DNA of 64,000 bases from positions 47,616,001-47,680,000 of the forward strand of contig OZ241833.1 of assembly GCA_965202585.1 (NCBI GenBank), read 5' to 3'. The stretch is from Thalia democratica. Lineage: Eukaryota. Position 1 is the stretch's first letter; each line of letters begins with the position of its first letter. Of the stretch, positions 1 through 53,523 are shown in pieces. A program made the translations under genes and the position numbers. The notes under the pieces were generated by a model. The model saw only the letters and a list, made by a program, of their open reading frames with translations, did not search any database and was not told where the DNA came from.

Positions 1-317
1 GTATACTTAAACTTGTAAACTAGTTAATGGTTCTACGCACCTGAAAACACCAGTAGATGTTATAATATTTATAATAAATATTATTGAGAAGTAGTATAAC
101 TGATTTTAAGAATATTGATATTTCTTTTGTTATACATAGTGTATACTAACAAGAGCATTTTACAAAAATGATAAAACAGTAAGATCTGAACACGAACCTG
201 CAAACGCCAGTAGTATTTACTACTGTTTGTAATATGTATCCAAACGTACTAATTAGTAATACTATTTGATAACTTTAATTTAGTTTTTATAAAATTCTGT
301 ACATAAAAGCTTCAAAC

Positions 318-441
318 CTGCAAACACCAGTGGCGGGGTCGCACTGCTTGGCCTGGTAGTTTCCTGATGACGCGTCACACTTCCTCGCGAACATTATGTT
401 GGTTCTGGCATCCACAAACTCCTTCTGGCAGTTTGTCAGGT
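318..441 (-). CDS. Exon: Tg1 repeat 5, first part ([40 protein letters not shown])
   Basis: Tg1 C...G.Y...QC motif; the gene continues beyond the window's left edge. Confidence 0.93.
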
Positions 442-3400
442 CTGAAAAGGATGACGTAAAAGTTATACATTGTTGCCGTTATAAAAATATTCATAAACCC
501 TTACATTGGTGATGGTGTAAAATTTTTTTGTCATTTATAGATATCTACAAACCTTAACACTCATAAAAACAGTAAGTTATAGAACCCTAATTAAAACATT
601 CAAACCTTTTCTTAATTATACAACCAAAAACCTTTGTAATTACTATTTTAAAGAATTATAAAAAATAGTTTAGTATGTTGCCATTTAAATAAAAGCATAA
701 TTCTTTTATTTTAATTAAAAAATATTTTAATCAGTCGCAAACCTTCGCAATCGTACCCAACTTGGTTTCTTTGGTGGGAAGTTCCCGGAATTTCAAGTCC
801 CTCTGGAGTTACGCACCTACAAATGTAAAATTATTTAACACTTATACAATGAAACTTAATACTTATGTGCTGATGATTGTAGTGATAGGCTGCATAAAAC
901 TTGTTTTTATGAATGTTCATTTTAAATAAAATATTTAAAGGCCCATCCAAGCGGGCTTAGGAAAAGTTTATTTTGTTGAATAAATCTTATATATACAACT
1001 GGTTTCAAAAAGTACACTTCAAACAAAAAACAGTACAATTATTTCATGTAGCGTGTTGCTACAATTTACAGCTATTTAAGTTTGAAAACTGGCACAGTGA
1101 AAATTGATTTAGTTAACCAAATCTAATTCTATTTTAACAAACAAATATGTATAGTTTATAAGTTATATTGGATATTGACTCCTGAACACGAATGGGGCTT
1201 TATTTCTACAATATAAAATAATATAATTTATATAAACAAATAAATATTAACCTGCACACGAATGGGGTGCACTGCCTGGGTTGGTAGCTGCCACTAGCGG
1301 TGCAGTTGGGCAGCATGTCGAACAAAGCCTGCCTGGTTTGTGGGTCCTGGATCTGGCTGAGTTGGCGCTCCAGCTCGCGTCTCTGGTCCGCACACAGGGG
1401 CTCGGTACGCGCTGTTATAATTGGTTATTCATAAACCAACTAGTGAGTAGCTAGTTAGTTTCGTTCAAGTGTATGGTTTATTCCCGACTTCGTTTAATTT
1501 ACTATGACTCTGCTGTGTTTTTATCACACTAGATAAAAGTTTACCGGAAGTTTTTAAATATTTAGTTAATAGATGCGTTTTTTTTTTTGTTTGCATTCTG
1601 TTTAGTATAGTGATATGTTTTATATAAAATAATTGATTACTGTTCAGCGTTATTTTTTGCGTTTGTAGTTAACTAGTCGTAACATTGTTTTCTTAAATAT
1701 AAAATCATGTAATACATTTAATTTATAATATTTTTACTATATCTACTTTTTTGTAATTAACAACACAAAGCTATAAAAATAAATGCGGTAACACATATAG
1801 TTCATCGATAAACAACAAACCTGGTTTTGTAGTTTCCACTGCTTGGGTTGTTTCTTCAGGTTTTGGTGTGGCTTCCCAAGTGATGATAGCCTCAGTGGCA
1901 AACTCAGTTGTCAGGATTGGCTTAACAGTGTTGTACAGTTCTAAAAAAATATTATATTGACCAGTGTAGTTAGCAAAATTTTATAGTTTTAAAATATATT
2001 TAGTTAGATACATAAAAGTAGTATTAATAATTCAGTTACACAATGTTGTCTAATTCAGAAAAAAATTCCAACAAAACAGACATATAAATAACTTTTAAGT
2101 TAGATAAGAATTCAACTATAATTTTCTAAACTCAAACATAAAACCTTGAGCATGTTAGAACATCCTCAAAACTACTAAACTTATACTTGATGCAAAAAGT
2201 GAGAAAACAATAAACAAAAAAGTCAAACATACATTGAAGGTTAATGTATATTAGTTTAATGAAACAGTTATCTCAAGATTAACAAACTAACGTTCGCAAG
2301 TGAAAGATCTTGTTCTTCCCTGGGGAAGTTCAGTGTTAGGAATCATCATCCCTGTTTTGATATCCACGCACCAGCAAACATTTGTGAAGTAGTTGCACTG
2401 TTGGTACTCGTATAAACCTGTTGATTTGTTTTTATTAATTGTTAACTGTTTTCGTTCAAACTTGTTGTTAAGGTTGTTTTATTATAATTAATAATTATTT
2501 TCCTAATATTGTGTTGGTGTTGGCTTGCTTACAATTATAATGAATCGTTTAAACCTGCGGTTTTATTGGTTAAATAGTATTTGTTATTTTTTATTTTTTT
2601 CTATATTTACTCATTATTATTGTCGTACAAAATATGTTTTTTTTGTTTGTTTATTATTATCAGTTATAATCACACATACTTTTCTTTAGATTGTGTTATA
2701 ATTTTTTAAACTAAATATCGAACACACCATGTGTAAAATTGCATGGTGGGTTAATAGTACAAACAAGAACATACCTGTAGTTGCATTGCACGATGGCACG
2801 TTTGGTCCGTCCATTATACCTTCGTTCTTGTTTCTCAGGATGAGGTCTGAGGTTTCGGAGTACTCACGTTGACAGGCGGTAAGGTCTGGAAACATTTGGG
2901 ATTAAGTACTTTAATTTTTTATCTTTTTGGGTAAAAGTTGCTTTTTTACTTTTTAAACTTTTAAAGTGTGCTACTTTTTTTGCGTTAGAAGGTAGTTAGA
3001 TATGGAGAAAATTAAAGTAAGTAAAAAGTTTGGTATAAAAATATTCGATATTGTTAATATTCTGTAATCAAAAGAAAATCTCATTAGTAAAACGAAATGA
3101 GACAATTCATATGACTTGCGTTGAAAATTGATCGGTGAGGTCTGTAGTAGGAAATAGTCACTTGAAACCAAGCTAATAAATCAGAATGTCAAAAATACCT
3201 ATAACTTTGTATATTTCAAAAATATAAACCGAAACACTAAAGCCTTAATAGTTTAATTTAAACATAATAATTCACAGTGCTCTTGTTTACAAGCCTTCAA
3301 ATCTATGTCGAGTAATTTAAATAGTTAATTGATAAGTTTACTATCTCTCTAAAACTAAGTGTATTATTTTCTTCTACAAATAGATTGAAATATTTATTGG

Positions 3401-6400
3401 TTTGATTGTAGAATACAAACAAAAAGTAATGTAACACACACTGTTATTTGCATATGCAATATTGTTTTTAATGAAAACAGATTAGATTGACCTTCGCTTC
3501 AAAATAGAGCTTTATACGTTCCTATAAAATTTTAATAAGCTCTGTTTTATGTCAACAACCTTAATTCAATTATTTAAATATTTCCTGATGTTTGTAATTG
3601 ACAAGGTTGTCAAAAGCGAATTAATCTTAACGAACTTTTATCTCAAACGAACACTGTTGCTCATTTTTTCTTCAGTTAAAAAATTTTTGTGGTGCACCGG
3701 TTTAACACCATCCTGTTTATATTGAGATTGACTTGTTTTTAACAAAAAATTTAAGCGAAGACTTCTCTTGAAGCTACAAACTTTTCCAAAGACAGTGACT
3801 TTGGTTAGTTATAATTTAAAAGCATCTGAATAAATAGAATAGTTAAAATAAAAAACTTGTTAAATTTTATTACTAAAAGTTACGCTTCTTAAAAAAAACA
3901 TTAAAAACATCAAAAGTAATCTTGGGTCAGTGCATTAAATGCCGTTAGCGTAAAAAACGTTAATTACTTAATTTAAATTTATTGTCATTTCAACTGTTAA
4001 TAGTTTTGTTTAACGTAATATGACATGTACTTAACTAATCCAAAAGAGCTTATCTTATTAACGTTTTGTCCAAGTCTTGTCTTACGCTCTGCTTTATCAA
4101 AAAAATTAATTGAAGTATATACTTGACGCTGTTAAACAATTTTAACATCGGTCGTCTTTGTACACCATAAATTGGTAAAATTGTTCATACAAGATATACA
4201 TTCTAATAGGTGTAACTGTTTTGAGATGTAAAACATTTAACGTTACAACCGAGCTGCGGATAAAATTAATATACTAAAACAAAAACTTTTTTTGGGAAAA
4301 TGTAAATGTTTTTCTAACCACTACAATCGAGTTGTGGGTTGAAATACCCGGTGACGTTGTTTCCTGTGACGTCATACGGCGCAACTTTCCCGGGAATCCC
4401 CACGCCGCTTTCCGTGGCGACGCACCTGCACACGTCATCGGTCTCGTTGCACTGCTGCGACGCAAAGTGGCCGCTTGGGGGCGCGCAAGTGGGAAGGAGC
4501 GACATCATTTGTTCGGCGCGGTCCGGGACGGTGCGGATGAGGTTGGAGGCCTGGTCGCGGTACTGGCGTTGACATTCCGTGAGGTCTGGTTGGAAAAATA
4601 AAAATAAAAGTTAAATACACTATTTAGTATTTATGCATAGTGAACAAAACTAGTTCTACCTTATTTTACAACAAAGGAAAAGTATTTTGACAGTTCAATA
4701 ATATTACAACCTTCACAGGTATAAAAAGGGTGCTCAGTAACATGTTTAAATAGCTATTAAACAAATATTCAAAACAGTGCAACCTTAAACGTTTTTTCAT
4801 CAGACAAAAACATTAAAATAAACTAAAACAAATAGTAATGTAAAAGGCAAACCTTCGCAATCGTAGTTGTTCATGTAAGGAGGATGCTCCGTGAAGGGGA
4901 TCCTAATCCCCTCGGGAGTCATGCACGTGCAGTTGCTGTTGAAGCACTGCCTCGGCAGGAACATGCCCTCATTGTCGCACTTGGGTCCGTACTGCTCGAC
5001 CAGATTCGCCAGCAAGGTGGCGTCATTAATTGCCCCTCCTCGCATGTTGGCCATCATCGCGTTGGTGGCTAAAGTGCACGGTCCCGGTACTGTGGGGGAA
5101 AAAACATGTTTTTTAACATGACTTTTGTTGTTGTAAAGTGAGGGCATAGTGAAAGCTTGCAGTGGTTTTTGATTTGGAAGAGTGCTGTACTTAAGGAAAA
5201 TAGCTAAAAAATGGTCATTTTAAATAAACGTTAACACTTGCACACACTATTGCAAAAAAAAAATAGCTTATTATGAAAATACAGAAATTTGAACTGTTAA
5301 AGTCTCATATTTCAACTGTCAATATTAACTAGACCTTAAAATCCACTAATGCAAAATGTTTTAAATTTAAATTTTACCAGTATAGTTTACTTACCTTGCG
5401 TAGTTGCTTCTTCCGTAGGTTGAGTGGTCATTTCTTGAGTTGTATATTCGAATGTTGATTGTTGGGTAGTACCACCAAATAAGTCTGTTAAATTAGATTG
5501 TTTACATCTACAAATATCAAGTTGCTTCTTTTTAACTCTTGTAGCACAAAAAAATAGCATTTTGTGCACCTGAATTCGAAACTTTTGTACATGATTACAT
5601 TAACATACGTAACATGACATTTAAAAAAAAAAGAAAAAGCTTTATTTCTTGTATTGTTTATTCTATTATACTTTTATCATTATGATGAAATGTTTCAAAA
5701 CTCTCACTTCCAAAGTACATTTCTCCGAAGTCGCCACCGTAGTAATCCCCATCATAATCTTGGGCGCACTTCTCCATACTGAGTTTGATGTCGTCAATAG
5801 CAACAAACGATCCCGCGTCCAAACCGCTGCTCTCCCCATTTATGCGCACCTAGTGGTTGAAAAAGTTGTTGAGAAAACTGTTTCTTTAGTTCTAATCGTT
5901 TAAAAAAATTTGTTTTTTTTCAAACATAAAAAATCTTTCTGGTGTTTTGTAATAAACTGTAATCTGAGACATAGCAAATTTATTTCTAGCTAAACAATAC
6001 AAACATATTTCCAAATCAAAGCTGTTTTTACAAAAACAAACCTGAAACTGCCTTCCTGGTCCGACGTAGTCCTTCATGTTGATGTTCTGTTGAACCCACT
6101 GTTCAGGGTTTTCCCCGGGAAGCACCATTGAAACAGTGGTGGGGGGAGTCCCGTCGGTGAATACGACCTCGACGTTGATGTAGACGGATCTTCCGTTGGC
6201 GATTGCCGCAAACTGGAGGCACGCTTCGTCTGTAAGGAGAAATAGTTATGAAGATGGGAAAACAACTGGTTAGTGTTTATGAGATAGTGTTTTTCAATTT
6301 GATATAAAACACATGCTTACTCTTCTTCTTCGGTTAAGCGTAATAGTTGTTACTTTTCGAGATTAAAGTTGATTTATGGCAAAAAAAAATCTTTTATTTT

Positions 6401-9400
6401 GTCATTAATAGTTCAGGTTAACAAAGCTGTTATTAGTATTTTTAAAAACTAAAACATTATTTAAACATTGGTAATTAAATAGTTCTAAAATTATACATTA
6501 AAAGTTATAATTTAAAAATTACCTGAAAATGAAGTTTTTGGTGACGTCATAATTGAAACGGTGTCTTTGTCTGAAGGCATCATGACGTAAGCATACCTTC
6601 CAGCTGCAAAAAAAAACTTAATGAGTTACAACAAAAACTATAAGCAAGTCGTACATAACAAATAAGGAATTGTTCATAAAACTTTTTATAAACTCAACAT
6701 CACATGTTATATATTATATTTATGTCTGAACACGAATTAAATTTGATTGTAGTTCAGCTGTCGAAAAAAGAGATAAAACTTGTTTTTAATACTTGCTAGA
6801 ATACCAACAAAACTTTTAGTGACTAATTACTTTCTTTAAACAAGTGAAAGTTTATTTATCAAAGTGACTGCAAATAGTATGAACCAAGAAAGTATTTTTG
6901 TAAAAATTTAAAAGGCATTCAAGCGTTACTTGTAGTACAACTTATGAAAACTACTCACAATTATCTTTTAATGAACTAACACCAGTTTATTCGTAAATGT
7001 CAATGATAAACTGAACATACATTTATATAGTTCTTAATACAACTTACAATTGTCATTGGTTGAATTGTCACCGCTTGGGCCATTCATAATTTCGTCCCTG
7101 GTAAACTGCCAATCCACGTTACTACCCTGCACTGATTTGTGCTCCCAGCCTTTAAAAAATAAATAATTGTTAGTACTTGTAATCTAAAACTTTCAGTGTA
7201 CTAAATCGTGCTTTGTTGAGTGCAGGCTAAATTCAGTTTTTGAGGTGGTGAAGAATTTCAAGTTTTGTTAAAAGTAAGAGTTTGCTAATTTACGTGCATT
7301 TTTTAAAAGAGCGCATTTATTTTCGCTTAAATAAACAGCAAAGTATTTCAAACTTTTAAAAAAGCTACGAGGTCAAAACAAAAATGTAATATACTATTTT
7401 ATTGCAACTAAAAACATTTAATTTACAAACAATTACGAGTCATAACAGTGAAGCATTTAGTTTTGCTTAAATAAATATAAAAGTGTTTTATCTATGGAAA
7501 AAGCTATAAAGTCAAAATAGTAATTTTTTAAAATCCAAAACACTTATTTTACTAACAACATTAGTCATAACAGGGAAGTAGTAGTGATTGTTTACAAATA
7601 GTGGCGCTACATTGGTACTTACAACAAGCTTTAATACAAATACAAGTTTCTTACTGATAAAATAAACTTTAAGCTATTATTTCATAAATGACAAAACTGT
7701 TCTGTTGAGTTTTATTTTCATTAAATAAACAAACTGGCTTAATCAAAAAGACTATATACCTTATCATAAAAGTCAAAATTATATTAAATTTTAAGTTATT
7801 ACTTTTTTTCTCTTGTTTCAAAAATAATTTTAAAGTTTTTACTTCATAAATAAGAAAATATATACAAATATATTCTTAGCAGATTGTCTTCTTAAGTTAC
7901 TATTTTAATGTCAGTTAAGTATAATTTATCATACACTTCGTATGATGCTTAAATAAGATATGTTGATGATTTATCTAAATTTTAATTAAAGTGTATTTAA
8001 AACTCTGGTACTGCGTTGTTATTTTTTCATGTTACTGGGAACTACAGGGTTATTTCTCAACACAAAAATAAACGTTAAATCATCAGATTTTTACTGTGAT
8101 GTCATAAGCCTTGTGGTAGGGCAATGAATTGAACGTTTGTTAACAAAATCAATTTATATTTTACAGGTGAATGCTTAAACATTTTTACTTTTACATTAAA
8201 CTTAAGCGAACTCTGGCTTCTTTTACTTCAACAAACGTATCTTACCTAATGGTATCAGCTTATTTTAATCTAAGAGAATTATCAAAGGTGTATAGCTTAG
8301 AAAAAACTTTTATAGTTATTGTATCTAAAAGAAGTGACTGTTTTTATTTTTTTAGTTCAATTTACTTATCTTTTATGCACTTACTTGTAACTAATGGCGC
8401 TACTAGCTTTGCTTATTGTTTTTTTTTGGTATAACTTGTGATTATAATTAAAAAATAAAAAGTATATTAATAATTTATTTTCTTTTTTTTTTCATTTGGT
8501 TTATTTTACCTGCGCACATGGGTATAGCTTCGTCAAAAGTGCAGTCGAAAGAGTCCTGTCTGTTGTTGACATCGATCGCATACCAGGACACGTTGAATCT
8601 GTTCTGCTGTTTGTTGAACGCAGATTCAGAGTAGAACTTTATTCTGAAACGTTTAGAGTGTAAGTTATAAAGCTGTTTAATAAAGTATCAAATAAACTGC
8701 TGTTGTGCAAATATATTATTCATTTTACGACAAAATAAAAACACTCAAATTTTTTGGTTCTAGGAGTTGGTGCACGAAAAACCTTTCGTCTTCAAACGCC
8801 TTTTCTAGGACTACTAAAATCTTTAATATAAGATAAGAATCTAATAGTAGAATCTTTAAGATAAGATAAGAATCCAATAGTACAATTTTTAAAATTGTAT
8901 TGACTTGTAAAAAATCTAAAAGTTTTTAGGTTGTATCACGAAACATAAAAATTAAAACAAAGTATGAACTAACAAAAGCTTGTTGCTGAAAGTGTAATCG
9001 GGGTAGACGCTTTGAGCAGCACAAAGTTTTTCGCCGAAATCTTTTTCAATGCCTGTGTATGAAAACTGGAGGTATTGTTTCGTGCAATCCTGGAAAAGCT
9101 GTCCCTCCAAATTGATGTTGGCGTCGAACTGCGTATTATATTTGTTTTAGGTAAAGTTAAATAAACTATTTATTACCATTTTTTAAGCTAAATTGTTTTA
9201 AGTATTTAATAACACCGACTTTTGCTTGCAAAAGATAACAATTTTACTGCTAGATCAATTTGTTTATTTACAATAAGAAATACTCCTGGCATTTATGTTC
9301 AATATTTTACATTTCTAAGTTTAAATTTGCTTCGAGTTTTAATTAAAAAATTTATTGCTAAAACTAGAAAGCTTGTATATTTACAAGATATTACCAAAAC

Positions 9401-15400: not shown

Positions 15401-18400
15401 GCGCGTACCTCTCAATTGTCACTCGGTAGCGCTGCACGCCCGTAACACCGATGAATTCGATGTCGGCACGGTCGTGGTAGGACTTGATGGTGAAGTCCTC
15501 GACTATCCTGAAGTCGGCGATTGTGGTTGATTCGACGGTTGTTGGGCAGTCGTAGTAGCTTATGCAGCTGTAAATTAAGTTGAAATGTAACTGATGTTTT
15601 TTTAACGAAGATTCCATTAAAATTGAGTCAACAAATTTTGAAGCACAACTTTATTAAATTCATTTATAAGTATTTGAACAGAGGTATTTGTTTTAAATTT
15701 TCTTTTATCAGTTTTAAGAAAGCTTACATTTACGCATACAGTAGAAAAATAACAGAATCATTTCAGGACATGTACATTTGGATTCACATGTCTTAATCAT
15801 AACTACTTCTACAAAAAACTCAAAACAATACTCAAAATCTCAACTAACGCTCCATTATAAAGCACAGGTAAATTCTCGGGGTAAGCAAACTAAAACTCGC
15901 ATACCTAATGTTACTATATATATAGTATAAAATATATTACATCAAAAATCTCAACTTACGTTCCCTTGTACAGCACAGGCAAGTTTTCAGGACAAGCACA
16001 CTTGGGCACGCAGGTCTGATCGTCGCACACAGGTCCGGTATCAGCATCATCGCACGTGAAATTGCACGGTGATGCGCAATTGTTGAACACCAGGTTGGAT
16101 GGACAAGATTGTGCTGTAATGTAGTAAAAGTAATGCTTTGAAACTTTTTGTGGATAATTTAAGTTATAGTATTAATTTGTGAAGTTTTTTCTAGGCAAAA
16201 AATAAAACTTTTGAAGTCGTCAACTTTTTGAATGTGTCTCTAAACTAATTGACACTTTGTGAAAAGTAAGTTACGATTAGCTTCAAAAAATAGTCTCTAA
16301 TCGTAACATGACAATTTTATACGAACTTGAGGTACAGTCATTTAGATTCTACATAATTTGAAAATTTTAATACAAACCTTTTTCACACTTAGCCTCATCG
16401 CTCCCATCGGAACAGTCTTTCACCTGATTGCAAACAAATGATTTCGGAAGACACAATCCATCGCACTCGTGTTCATCAGATGTACAGGCTGTATAATTGA
16501 TATAATAAAGTTTTAACGTATCACTAAACATTAATTAAAACAAATGATTCTGGTAAACACAATCCGTCACATTCGTGTTATTAAGTGGTAAGAGCTGTAA
16601 TTTAAAATAAGTAAAGGTACTGTCATACCAAATGCAAACTTCTTATTTACTTAAACGTGTTTGCACAAACCGTCATATTCATAATCTTCAGTGGTACTTA
16701 TTTATTTAAATTCTCTTTAGCTCTGCTTGCTACTACTTTATACTTGATTACAGTACGTAAGTCGAATAACAATAAAGCAAAAATTCCTAAATAAATTAGG
16801 GTAGGGTATTTAAAACCTACTTTTTATTAAAATTAAAAGTTAATATATTTTCACGCCAAATTTTTTATGAAAAACTGTCTAAGCTTCTACACGTAGAACA
16901 TTGTAAAGTTTCTATTTGTTTCGGTTAATACCTACCAATGGTATCCAGGTTGAAGTCGTAGTTGTCGTAACCGTAGTTACCGTAATCTCCCCCCTCCGTA
17001 TTTTCAGAGGAACTTTTGCACGCTCCATCACTCAGTTTGATGTCGTCGATTGCTAAATCTGATTTGTAACTCTTTCCGCGTTGACCGTCGAATCCGAACT
17101 GTTTGGAATTTTTTTTTAGTTTGATACATACTCTTATTTTAGGTTGTATAACTTTTTTTGTATTAAACTTAATTTGATCATGTTTTTATCTTAACTTTTT
17201 TAATCAAAATTTGGACATAAACAAATACACTAAAACAACAGCTGCTATGTCAGAATAAATAAAAAAAGAAACAGAAAAACAAACTATGTTCTACACTACA
17301 CATCCAAACTTATCTACGCCTAGGTTTAACTAAGTGTTAATTAAAGCACTTTAAGTTGTTTGATGAAAATAAGGTTTATGATACAGCTGCTTCCTAGTCT
17401 CTTTTAAATTGTAAATTTATCCTTATTTTAAACAAAATATTGAAAAATAAAAATAAGTAAAAACAATTTTTAACCTGCACTCTAACATTATTCTGCTCAG
17501 TAGTAACTTTAGCTTTTTTATAAACAAAACTACATTAGTATATAAACTAATTATTACCTGCACCCTAACACTACTCTGCTCTAATAATTTAAATCCTACC
17601 TGCACTCTTGTCATGCTCTGCTCTATAGTGACTTCCGTCTTCTTCCACTGTTCGCCCGTCACCTCGTCCGTGGAGTAGATGTCCCTGGTCTCGTTGTTTC
17701 CCTCCTTCCTCTCCATCACGAACAACCTTCCTCCCAGGTTTCCGCTGTCGTCGTTGTCGGCCCGGTTCAGAAACCAGAAGGACAAGCAGGACTCGCCTGT
17801 GGAAGAAGTTAAGAGTGAAACAGTTTTTTTAAGTTTGTTTTTTTTTTAATTTGGTCTCGCCATTGGAAGAAGGCGAAGTTATTAAAAAGAGGTTAGAAAG
17901 TTTTAGAATAAAAAATATTTTAGAATGTTTATTCTTATATTTTTAAAATTTGAGATGTTTTTAGATGTTTAATAACTTATTTATTGATACAATATGTTCA
18001 TGGACTATAAACTAAAACAGGCAGATTTTGAAAAAAAGGATTCGCCGTTAGAAAGTTTCTTAAGAGTGAAGTAGTTTTCTACGGTTTACATGTACGCTAA
18101 ATTTTGTTTTAACTTTGTATAAAGACTTTTTTTGAATTTTGCTTATGCGAGTTAATCTAGTATTAACTAGTTGACGTAAATTATACAACTAAAGATACTC
18201 AACAACTTTAAAGTTTAGTACAAGACAATTAACAGGTCTTAATGTAAGATTTAAAGTTTAAATAGTCTATGTTTTAGCATTATTATGTATAAGTTTAGAG
18301 ACTGATACATAAATAAATTTACCTTTCATCATAACAAGTGGAGAATACAGGATTGCATTATCCATTGGTTTTCTTTTTGAAGCCTCGATAAAAGCATATC

Positions 18401-45793: not shown

Positions 45794-46585
45794 TCAGAAA
45801 TCCTCTCCAACATCATCTTCATCTTCTCTTTTAGAGTCTTCTTCAGGTTCGCTCGAATCTTTGTCTTCAGCTCGAGCTGAATACGTCAATGCAGGATACG
45901 TCATAGTTTGATACGTCATCACAGGATACGTCAATGCAGGTACGTTGTTGCTAATAGCAGGAACACTCACAATAAAGATACACAATAAAAGTAGGAGTAT
46001 CATCAGAGCCGCTCCTTTATACGTGCCGGTCAGTGACCACATGCCACGGATTCTCTGGTAAAGTGAACCAACAACTGGGATACCATTAACTAACCATACT
46101 CTCAGAAACCAGTTATTACCTAAAATAACGTTCCATTGACCGTTACTTAGAGAAACAATTACGAACAGGTTGCTGTGGAGTTCAGTGGGTGTTGTTACGG
46201 GCACAGGCATTAAAGCATCAGGTCCTGGAACGTTCATAACAGTCGTGACGTCATGTCCTCTTCTGTATGGAGAAAAGCCCAAGTAGTCTGTCATATTGAG
46301 AACCAAGTTAGGTCTGTACTCAAGTGCAGGTAAACTTGGAAACATTATTACTGTTCTAGTTTGGGGCAATACGTTTTGAGGTTGCAACTGGTATATATAA
46401 CGAACTCTAACTGCTGTTCGTCTTCCTACTGTTAGAAGTTTTAGGTGTATGTGAGTTCTGTCGATAATAATCGTCATTAAGTTTTCTAAGACGTCGCTGT
46501 ATGGAGGTTGACCGGTAGCCTGAACTGTTACGAGTACACCAGGCGTTGTTGGATTACCGTAGCTCACTTTGATTTGTACCTCCAT
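45794..46585 (-). CDS. Unrecognised single-coding-exon protein, family member B (263 aa), with a hydrophobic segment and acidic tail
   Basis: Long ORF; paralogous motifs (KVSYGN, MFPSLPA, TDYLGFSPYRR). Confidence 0.88.
   Translation of the reverse strand: MEVQIKVSYGNPTTPGVLVTVQATGQPPYSDVLENLMTIIIDRTHIHLKLLTVGRRTAVRVRYIYQLQPQNVLPQTRTVIMFPSLPALEYRPNLVLNMTDYLGFSPYRRGHDVTTVMNVPGPDALMPVPVTTPTELHSNLFVIVSLSNGQWNVILGNNWFLRVWLVNGIPVVGSLYQRIRGMWSLTGTYKGAALMILLLLLCIFIVSVPAISNNVPALTYPVMTYQTMTYPALTYSARAEDKDSSEPEEDSKREDEDDVGEDF
45884..45943 (-). repeat. 15-bp coding minisatellite, four units (PALTY-PVMTY-QTMTY-PALTY) in family member B
   Basis: atacgtca recurs with a 15-nt period. Confidence 0.85.
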
Positions 46586-53210: not shown

Positions 53211-53523
53211 AACGGGTCAAAAAAGCACTAAGACATAATTACACGAGATTACTAAATTGCACGTAAAAAATTTTGTACGGAAGGTCTTTTCTGTACGAGC
53301 GTAAAATTATATGCGTATATAAAACTGAAAAACAAATAAATAAAAATATAAAAAAGAAAAAAAAAATCTGACCGAGAGTATGGGTTAGGGGTAACAGTGA
53401 TAGAAAAAATAATAACAAAATCACTAATATAACAATTTAAAAAACAAATAACAATATATAAAACTTAAATGATTTAAAAAAAACACTACCGGCCGAGGGT
53501 AAAGGTTTGAGGTAACAGTGATA
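53211..53523. mobile_element. Decayed element related to 39894-40254
   Basis: Begins acgggtcaaa and carries gg(t)aacagtgata twice (~53390 and ~53512), as in the 39.9-kb element. Confidence 0.4.

Follow-up and report, generated by a model that had tools for sequence, protein, structure and literature searches.

A candidate duplication-born intron in a thyroglobulin type-1 repeat of the tunicate Thalia democratica

The fifth thyroglobulin type-1 (Tg1) repeat of a gene of Thalia democratica is interrupted by an intron in the Arg codon of its C-R-C-V motif. In the explanation that we prefer, and to which we give about even credence, this is a young, lineage-specific intron that arose by local duplication of a short CAG|GT exon segment. 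The exon end upstream of the intron recurs twice inside it, and the more distal recurrence is joined directly to sequence resembling the start of the next coding piece. We regard the locus as a good yet incomplete candidate for a duplication-born intron.

The window analysed here is a 64-kb stretch of T. democratica DNA, the left 6.6 kb of which carries a minus-strand gene for a secreted protein of this AT-rich planktonic tunicate. The gene comprises MAM-like exons (6604-5707), a Thr-rich linker and five Tg1 repeats (Table 1), with a G+C content of 40-63% in exons and about 25% in introns. The first exon of repeat 5 matches the Pfam family Thyroglobulin_1 (PF00086, E=5.5e-05), is bordered by an acceptor (ttttcag at 442+) and a donor GT at 317-316, and has a GC content of 0.54 and a GC3 of 0.71. 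Exon flanks of the form AG|GT surround four of the 12 introns of the gene, three of these four being the introns internal to Tg1 repeats. The succession of domain types along the gene (743-6604, minus) is MAM-like, Thr-rich linker, A, B, B, linker, A, B..., and the order A, B, B / A, B... of the Tg1 types suggests a block duplication of repeats.

Table 1. Tg1 repeats, exon-end copies and associated sites in the left part of the window
Feature	Position	Strand	Description
Tg1 repeat 1	5089-4853	minus	single exon
Tg1 repeat 2	4585-4319	minus	single exon
Unbroken site in repeat 2	4420..4431	minus	TGC AGG TGC GTC
Tg1 repeat 3	2885-2775 + 2417-2292	minus	split at ACAG|GTTT
Repeat 3 intron	2418..2774	minus	
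Internal copy in repeat 3 intron	2570-2539	minus	resembles the spliced junction
Tg1 repeat 4	1411-1252 + 816-743 (span 743..1411)	minus	intron 1251-817, at GCAG|GTGCGT
Exon-end copy in repeat 4 intron	1199-1181	minus	CCCCATTCGTGTTCAGG; family D2; 70 nt past the donor
Tg1 repeat 5, first exon	441-318	minus	DLTNCQKEF...QCDPATGVC + AG of the Arg codon
Repeat 5 intron, visible part	41..317	minus	277 nt with the AG at 42-41 as its end, or else extending beyond the left window edge
Copy c1	316..333	minus	live exon end CCACTGGTGTTTGCAG + donor GT
Copy c2	196..213	minus	intron-internal CTACTGGCGTTTGCAG|GT; 16/18 to c1, 16/18 to c3
Copy c3	39..56	minus	CTACTGGTGTTTTCAG|GT; 16/18 to c1; AG at 42-41
Continuation of c3	7..40	minus	G TGC GTA GAA CCA TTA ACT AGT TTA CAA GTT TAA

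Three copies of the repeat 5 exon end

The first exon of repeat 5 ends on the minus strand as ACT GGT GTT TGC AG|gt at 318. A preliminary description of this DNA had reported this exon end and two copies of it in the following intron, and we confirm all three, with coordinates shifted by 1-2 nt. A repeat search places the members of the family (D1) at 35-56, 192-213 and 312-333; the copies were taken as 18-mers (CYACTGGYGTTTKCAGGT), here called c1, c2 and c3. They are the only three 18-mer matches with at most 3 mismatches in the 64-kb window, where 0.14 are expected, and dinucleotide shuffling of the repeat 5 intron, repeated 20000 times, never produced even a single match with at most 2 mismatches. 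Tandem Repeats Finder, run on 1-1500, returned nothing relevant. It is barely credible that an assembly artefact or chance produced the copies: they differ from one another at two of 18 positions each and are separated by unique sequence, the shuffles (0/20000) do not reproduce them, and of the words sampled from 1-6000, contigs of runs X1 and X2 (one sample) and X3 (labelled as another organism) contain 0.89 and 0.67. Both c2 and c3 carry T where the exon has a synonymous C (GCC, Ala), which fits copies that retain an older codon.

The copy c3 reads on directly into GTGCGTAGAACCA (C-V-E-P), giving the translation RCVEPLTSLQV* with a TAA at 9-7; our translation thus bears out the earlier statement that c3 continues as an unbroken C-R-C-V junction ending in a stop. 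Over its first 13 nt this continuation agrees at 10 positions with the beginning of the second repeat 4 exon, and its codons spell the Tg1 motif C-V-x-P. Because both c3 and what follows it match, the end of the upstream exon adjoins the start of the downstream one here in genomic DNA, a state that is otherwise present only after splicing. The direct join of c3 to C-V-x-P is hard to account for if the intron is old and is predicted if it was born by duplication. The exonic flanks are of the AG|GT type (TGCAG|GTGCGT, combining the exon end at 318 with the sequence that starts at 40). In a plain echo of the donor, the exon end would lead into the start of its own intron, but c3 is followed by GTGCGTAGAACCA and not by GTTTGAAGC, and it is the sole exon-end copy in the window that continues into coding-type sequence.

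If the AG at 42-41 is, or copies, an acceptor, as this comparison presumes, the 16 nt of c3 that precede it match the exon end at 14 positions (13 of 14 over 14 nt), compared with a mean of 5.7 and a maximum of 11 for matches between intron ends and exon ends in 132 mismatched exon/intron pairings. Repeat 5 provides the only instance among the 12 introns of the gene in which the intron end copies the upstream exon end. In a strand-aware search of the window, exon-end copies ending in AG were found in repeat 5, in repeat 4 and in a ladder of copies at 17473, and nowhere else.

The AG of c3 is either an acceptor or the fossil of one. The segment 40-10 has a GC content of 0.33 and a GC3 of 1/10, against a GC3 of 0.71 for exon 441-318 and of 0.52-0.77 for the remaining Tg1 exons; even against a GC3 of 0.45 the value has P<=0.023. 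Because of this low GC and GC3, the TAA at 9-7 and a Cys codon changed from TGC to TTC, we take c3 together with 40-7 to be no live exon but, probably, a decayed relic of the place where the second half of repeat 5 begins. That half in its live form, and its live acceptor, probably lie to the left of the window. This agrees with the earlier suspicion that c3 is a copy of a true exon outside the window. That the AG at 42-41 is instead the live acceptor of a very short exon is less probable, though far from negligible.

The status of c2 is more ambiguous. The sequence after it matches the intron start at 2 of 14 positions and the downstream exon start at 5 of 14 (p=0.3), neither of which is significant, and c2 could represent either another round of duplication or a later donor echo. 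As exon-end copies beside donors are common in the window, c2 may be such an echo and may be unconnected with the birth of the intron. Both c2 (at 198|197) and c3 (at 41|40) contain the AG|GT sequence form of a recursive splice site. The 5' edge of c2 is overlapped by a hairpin at 208-225 (7-bp stem, 4-nt loop), and an AT-rich palindrome of 23 nt (62-84) is 5 nt away from the 5' edge of c3; these could be sites of breakage or template switching, or chance features of AT-rich DNA.

The intron site in other Tg1 repeats and in other animals

At the homologous site, repeat 2 is unbroken within its exon, and repeats 1 and 3, which have the codons ACG and TGG and so no AG, have no intron there, as the preliminary description had stated. 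However, the intron of repeat 4, which went unmentioned in that description, falls in the same Arg codon as the intron of repeat 5. For this reason an older intron at repeat 5 retains some probability. Such an intron may have been inherited together with that of repeat 4, and its donor edge would later have been copied inward, making c2 and c3 donor echoes; we consider this rather unlikely, although it is a serious contender. In its favour, repeat 4 has not only the identical intron position but also a donor-type echo, a copy of its own exon end (16/18; p=0 in 2000 shuffles) that could be an ordinary echo in an existing intron. The introns of repeats 4 and 5 have no similarity to each other.

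The relationships among the repeats speak against inheritance of an old intron. Pairwise identity among the Tg1 repeats is 23-37%, and a maximum-likelihood tree, in which branches are long, pairs repeats 1 and 4 with support of 90/80. These two have in common a short C3-C4 loop, TPEG and YDCE, and repeats 2, 3 and 5 all begin with DLTxCQ at a phase-1 exon border and have a C3-C4 loop that is longer. Judged by their sequences, repeats 4 and 5 are not sisters, and the intron pattern, with repeats 4 and 5 split and repeats 1, 2 and 3 not, therefore requires at least two events under any history. The preliminary description had proposed that intron positions be mapped onto a tree of the Tg1 repeats; this mapping separates repeats 4 and 5. 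At repeat 5 we infer a gain of the intron rather than losses elsewhere.

An intron at this codon in outgroup orthologues and in most metazoan Tg1 domains would, according to the preliminary description, refute a gain. No intron was found in the codon that separates the fourth Cys from the fifth in any of the 14 sampled outgroup Tg1 domains with readable exon structure, none of which is an orthologue. Ten outgroup domains span CxCV in one exon, four from Amphiura (L004), four from Anneissia (L006) and two from a marine animal (L002). In four domains of Lamellibrachia (L005) the split falls three codons ahead of the fourth Cys, and two Anneissia domains are split just before Q-C. This absence at the codon among the sampled domains also counts against an old intron.

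A close relative (P0001) is encoded on a 740-nt ENA contig (L001; marine metagenome, sample ERZ17174903), which carries repeat 2 at 84% amino acid identity, unbroken at the homologous site (TGCAGGTGTGTT) and with identical exon borders. Between the window and this contig, repeat 2 has a dS of 0.51 and a dN of 0.11, and the introns are unalignable. We judge the copies c2 and c3 to be young because they differ from the exon at two of 18 sites, to be set against this dS and the unalignable introns; they are probably younger than the split from the relative on L001, with a wide interval on 18 sites. With repeat 2 as query against all representative proteins, P0001 was the one close relative, the other matches being distant multi-Tg1 proteins. 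Neither the homologous-protein search nor a scan of JGI metagenome contigs yielded orthologues of repeat 5 or repeat 4, and no intron-less orthologue or allele of repeat 5 was found. A search for RNA runs returned only a marine metatranscriptome with 8% of the sampled words.

The intron of repeat 3 lies at a different AG|GT. Its end matches amount to 8 + 7 of 32 positions (sum p=0.023), and its internal copy resembles the spliced junction at 10 of 16 positions upstream and 10 of 16 downstream (20/32; shuffle p=0.006). The sequences that follow the internal copies of repeats 5 (c2), 4 and 3 match the downstream exon at 5, 6 and 8 of 14 positions, respectively, against 2, 3 and 4 for the intron start. 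This trend toward the downstream exon is weak, with a combined p of 0.03 that becomes 0.12 without the repeat 3 copy, which was chosen on the same criterion. If these hints are real, the Tg1-internal introns of repeats 3, 4 and 5 form an age series of one process, with a footprint that is clear in repeat 5 and faint in repeats 4 and 3. In the intron after repeat 2, the end of that exon with its donor recurs weakly (13/18, p=0.03) at 4239-4256 (minus), 62 nt in.

Exon-end copies elsewhere in the window

We scanned the whole window for local direct repeats of 18 nt with at most 2 mismatches and a spacing of at most 500 nt, where one copy had to contain 8 or more G+C. This gave 10 clusters, compared with 0.03 in block shuffles, and most of them lie beside donors. 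In addition to those of repeats 4 and 5, there are clusters at 15836, 17473, 21577, 35990, 45877 and 53383. Copies of exon ends at or beside donors occur at 15836/15947, 17473/17556/17609 (a three-step ladder), 21577/21735, 35990/36104 and 45877/45922. The four of these loci that were examined in detail (15836, 17473, 21577 and 35990) have the real intron start after the AG|GT of the copy.

Two of the clusters have features of their own. At 45877 a GATACGTCA motif occurs four times and runs to CAG|GT. At 53383-53401 and 53504-53522 there is a direct repeat of about 30 nt with 121-nt spacing (ccgag.g.ta..GGTT.G.GGTAACAGTGAT), which lies in AT-rich, apparently non-coding DNA away from any obvious exon edge.

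These loci bear on the possibility that the repeat 5 intron is old and that its donor edge was copied inward. Such inward copying would be in keeping with the five further exon-end-copy loci, four of which carry the real intron start, with the confinement of similarity at repeat 5 to a short core, and with the lack of a significant downstream-exon match after c2. It accounts for c2 and for the repeat 4 copy, but for c3 only through an extra event. The contact between c3 and GTGCGT would have to result from a deletion at microhomology, with one CAGGT in an echo and the other in the acceptor, or else c3 would have to be a copy of an acceptor that was already similar. A deletion would have joined c3 to the live exon, yet 40-10 has its GC3 of 1/10 and is followed by a stop, and a copied acceptor merely shifts the question to the real acceptor. 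Moreover, the plain echoes elsewhere run into the intron start, whereas c3 runs into coding-type sequence.

Short shared patches are also found among the introns of the Tg1 gene. The 11-mer TTCGTGTTCAG, equal to the repeat 4 exon end but for a G -> T change, occurs exactly at 186-196, 1182-1192 and 6726-6736 (minus), in each case in an intron of this gene; one of these copies adjoins c2 and another is the repeat 4 echo. With a further site at 1252-1262 that has one mismatch, there are four matches at up to 1 mismatch, where 0.72 are expected. This distribution suggests that short patches have been pasted between the introns of one gene.

A possible duplication route and known systems

Under the duplication explanation, repeat 5 would formerly have been a single exon reading ...ACT GGT GTT TGC AGG TGC GTA GAA CCA..., as repeat 2 remains today. 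At least one local duplication would have set further copies of ...ACTGGTGTTTGCAGGT... downstream, and their present spacing would derive either from tandem units later reshaped by insertions and deletions or from a short staggered-break duplication that was filled with AT-rich DNA. The spliceosome would then have used the first copy for its GT and a downstream copy for its AG, leaving the mRNA unaltered, while the DNA between the copies drifted toward A+T. The copy c3 (56-39) with 40-7 would be the fossil of the unbroken junction.

The preliminary description had attributed the intron to tandem duplication, with the upstream copy providing the donor and the downstream copy the acceptor. The part of this proposal that concerns the intron end is supported by the 14/16 match of the downstream copy, but the remainder fares less well. 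The intron start matches the downstream exon start at 6 of 16 positions (p ~0.2), with only GT..G.AG in common, and the 50-nt flanks of the copies give no significant alignment with the exon or with each other, so that similarity is limited to 18-22 nt. Nor does repeat 5 show the Rogers-model feature of an interior derived from exon sequence with an intron length equal to the duplicated length. Uniform decay of a tandem unit of 120-157 nt does not explain a core that is 89% identical next to flanks with no similarity at all. Either the unit was short from the outset and a spacer came in afterwards, or a staggered break led to a short fill-in duplication around filler DNA. On the sequence, a short duplication around filler DNA, of the type seen in Daphnia break repair, would fit as well as a classical tandem duplication.

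The same pattern could be produced by insertion of a mobile element into repeat 5, the 18-nt direct repeat then being the duplicated overhang of the target site. We consider this very improbable, a judgement that applies to the mobile element only, as the filler or staggered-break version is counted within the duplication explanation. Insertion and filler alike draw support from the likeness of the locus in form to Daphnia break-repair introns, from an interior without similarity to the exon, and from the hairpins and palindromes near the 5' boundaries of c2 and c3; on the other side, the Daphnia repeats measure 4-12 bp and those here 16-18. For a mobile element in particular, the interiors of the repeat 4 and repeat 5 introns have no second copy in the 64-kb window, and neither a poly-A tail nor a terminal inverted repeat is present. 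The 11-mer patches shared between the introns of the gene favour local copy-paste instead.

A broader proposition, which we put forward tentatively and with some doubt, is that local copy-paste at AG|GT sites is actively creating introns in this tunicate, with TGC-AGG-TGC-GTN as one target that is hit repeatedly. Repeats 4 and 5 would have gained introns there independently and repeat 2 would be unoccupied; repeat 3 would have gained an intron at another AG|GT, and the junction fossils might serve as recursive splice sites. The origins of new spliceosomal introns are still argued from a handful of well-documented cases, and a genome with frequent duplication of AG|GT exon segments and graded footprints would make the duplication route countable and datable over many introns.

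If the duplication explanation holds, the repeat 5 intron would belong to the already known class of introns gained by duplication. The Rogers-model examples, as summarised in PMC4974935, include vertebrate ATP2A1 (Hellsten et al. 2011) and two fission-yeast genes (SPOG_01682, SOCG_00815) in which the intron spans several 24-bp AGGT duplicates. Repeat 5 resembles these cases in its coding AG|GT proto-splice site, in the repetition of the exon end at the far end of the intron, in having more than two copies and in an mRNA that is predicted to be unaltered. It differs from them in that its copies are non-adjacent, with cores of 18-22 nt separated by 100-140 nt of unrelated AT-rich DNA, and in having an intron start unlike the downstream exon.

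Repeat 5 also has much in common with the 'TD introns' described at AG/GY proto-splice sites in Drosophila (Lehmann et al. 2010, PMC2891723), namely a novel position in a conserved domain, a strong proto-splice site that is kept in an intron-less paralogue (repeat 2) and similar surroundings of donor and acceptor (11/15 by the Drosophila measure, with 3.75 expected by chance). The Drosophila introns rest on comparisons between species and that of repeat 5 on the footprint within the gene, which is much clearer on the upstream side. The neo-introns of Daphnia pulex, attributed to the repair of staggered double-strand breaks (Li et al. 2009; PMC4202315), likewise show a direct repeat (here c1/c3), an internal direct repeat (here c2) and parallel gains at one site, although the direct repeat is 4-12 bp long in Daphnia and 16-18 nt long at repeat 5. 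Finally, c2 and the repeat 4 copy are like exon-edge echoes, in which a short exon end with its AG|GT recurs within a few hundred nucleotides inside the adjacent intron. Plain echoes of this kind run on past the GT into the intron start, but c3 leads into the beginning of the next coding piece.
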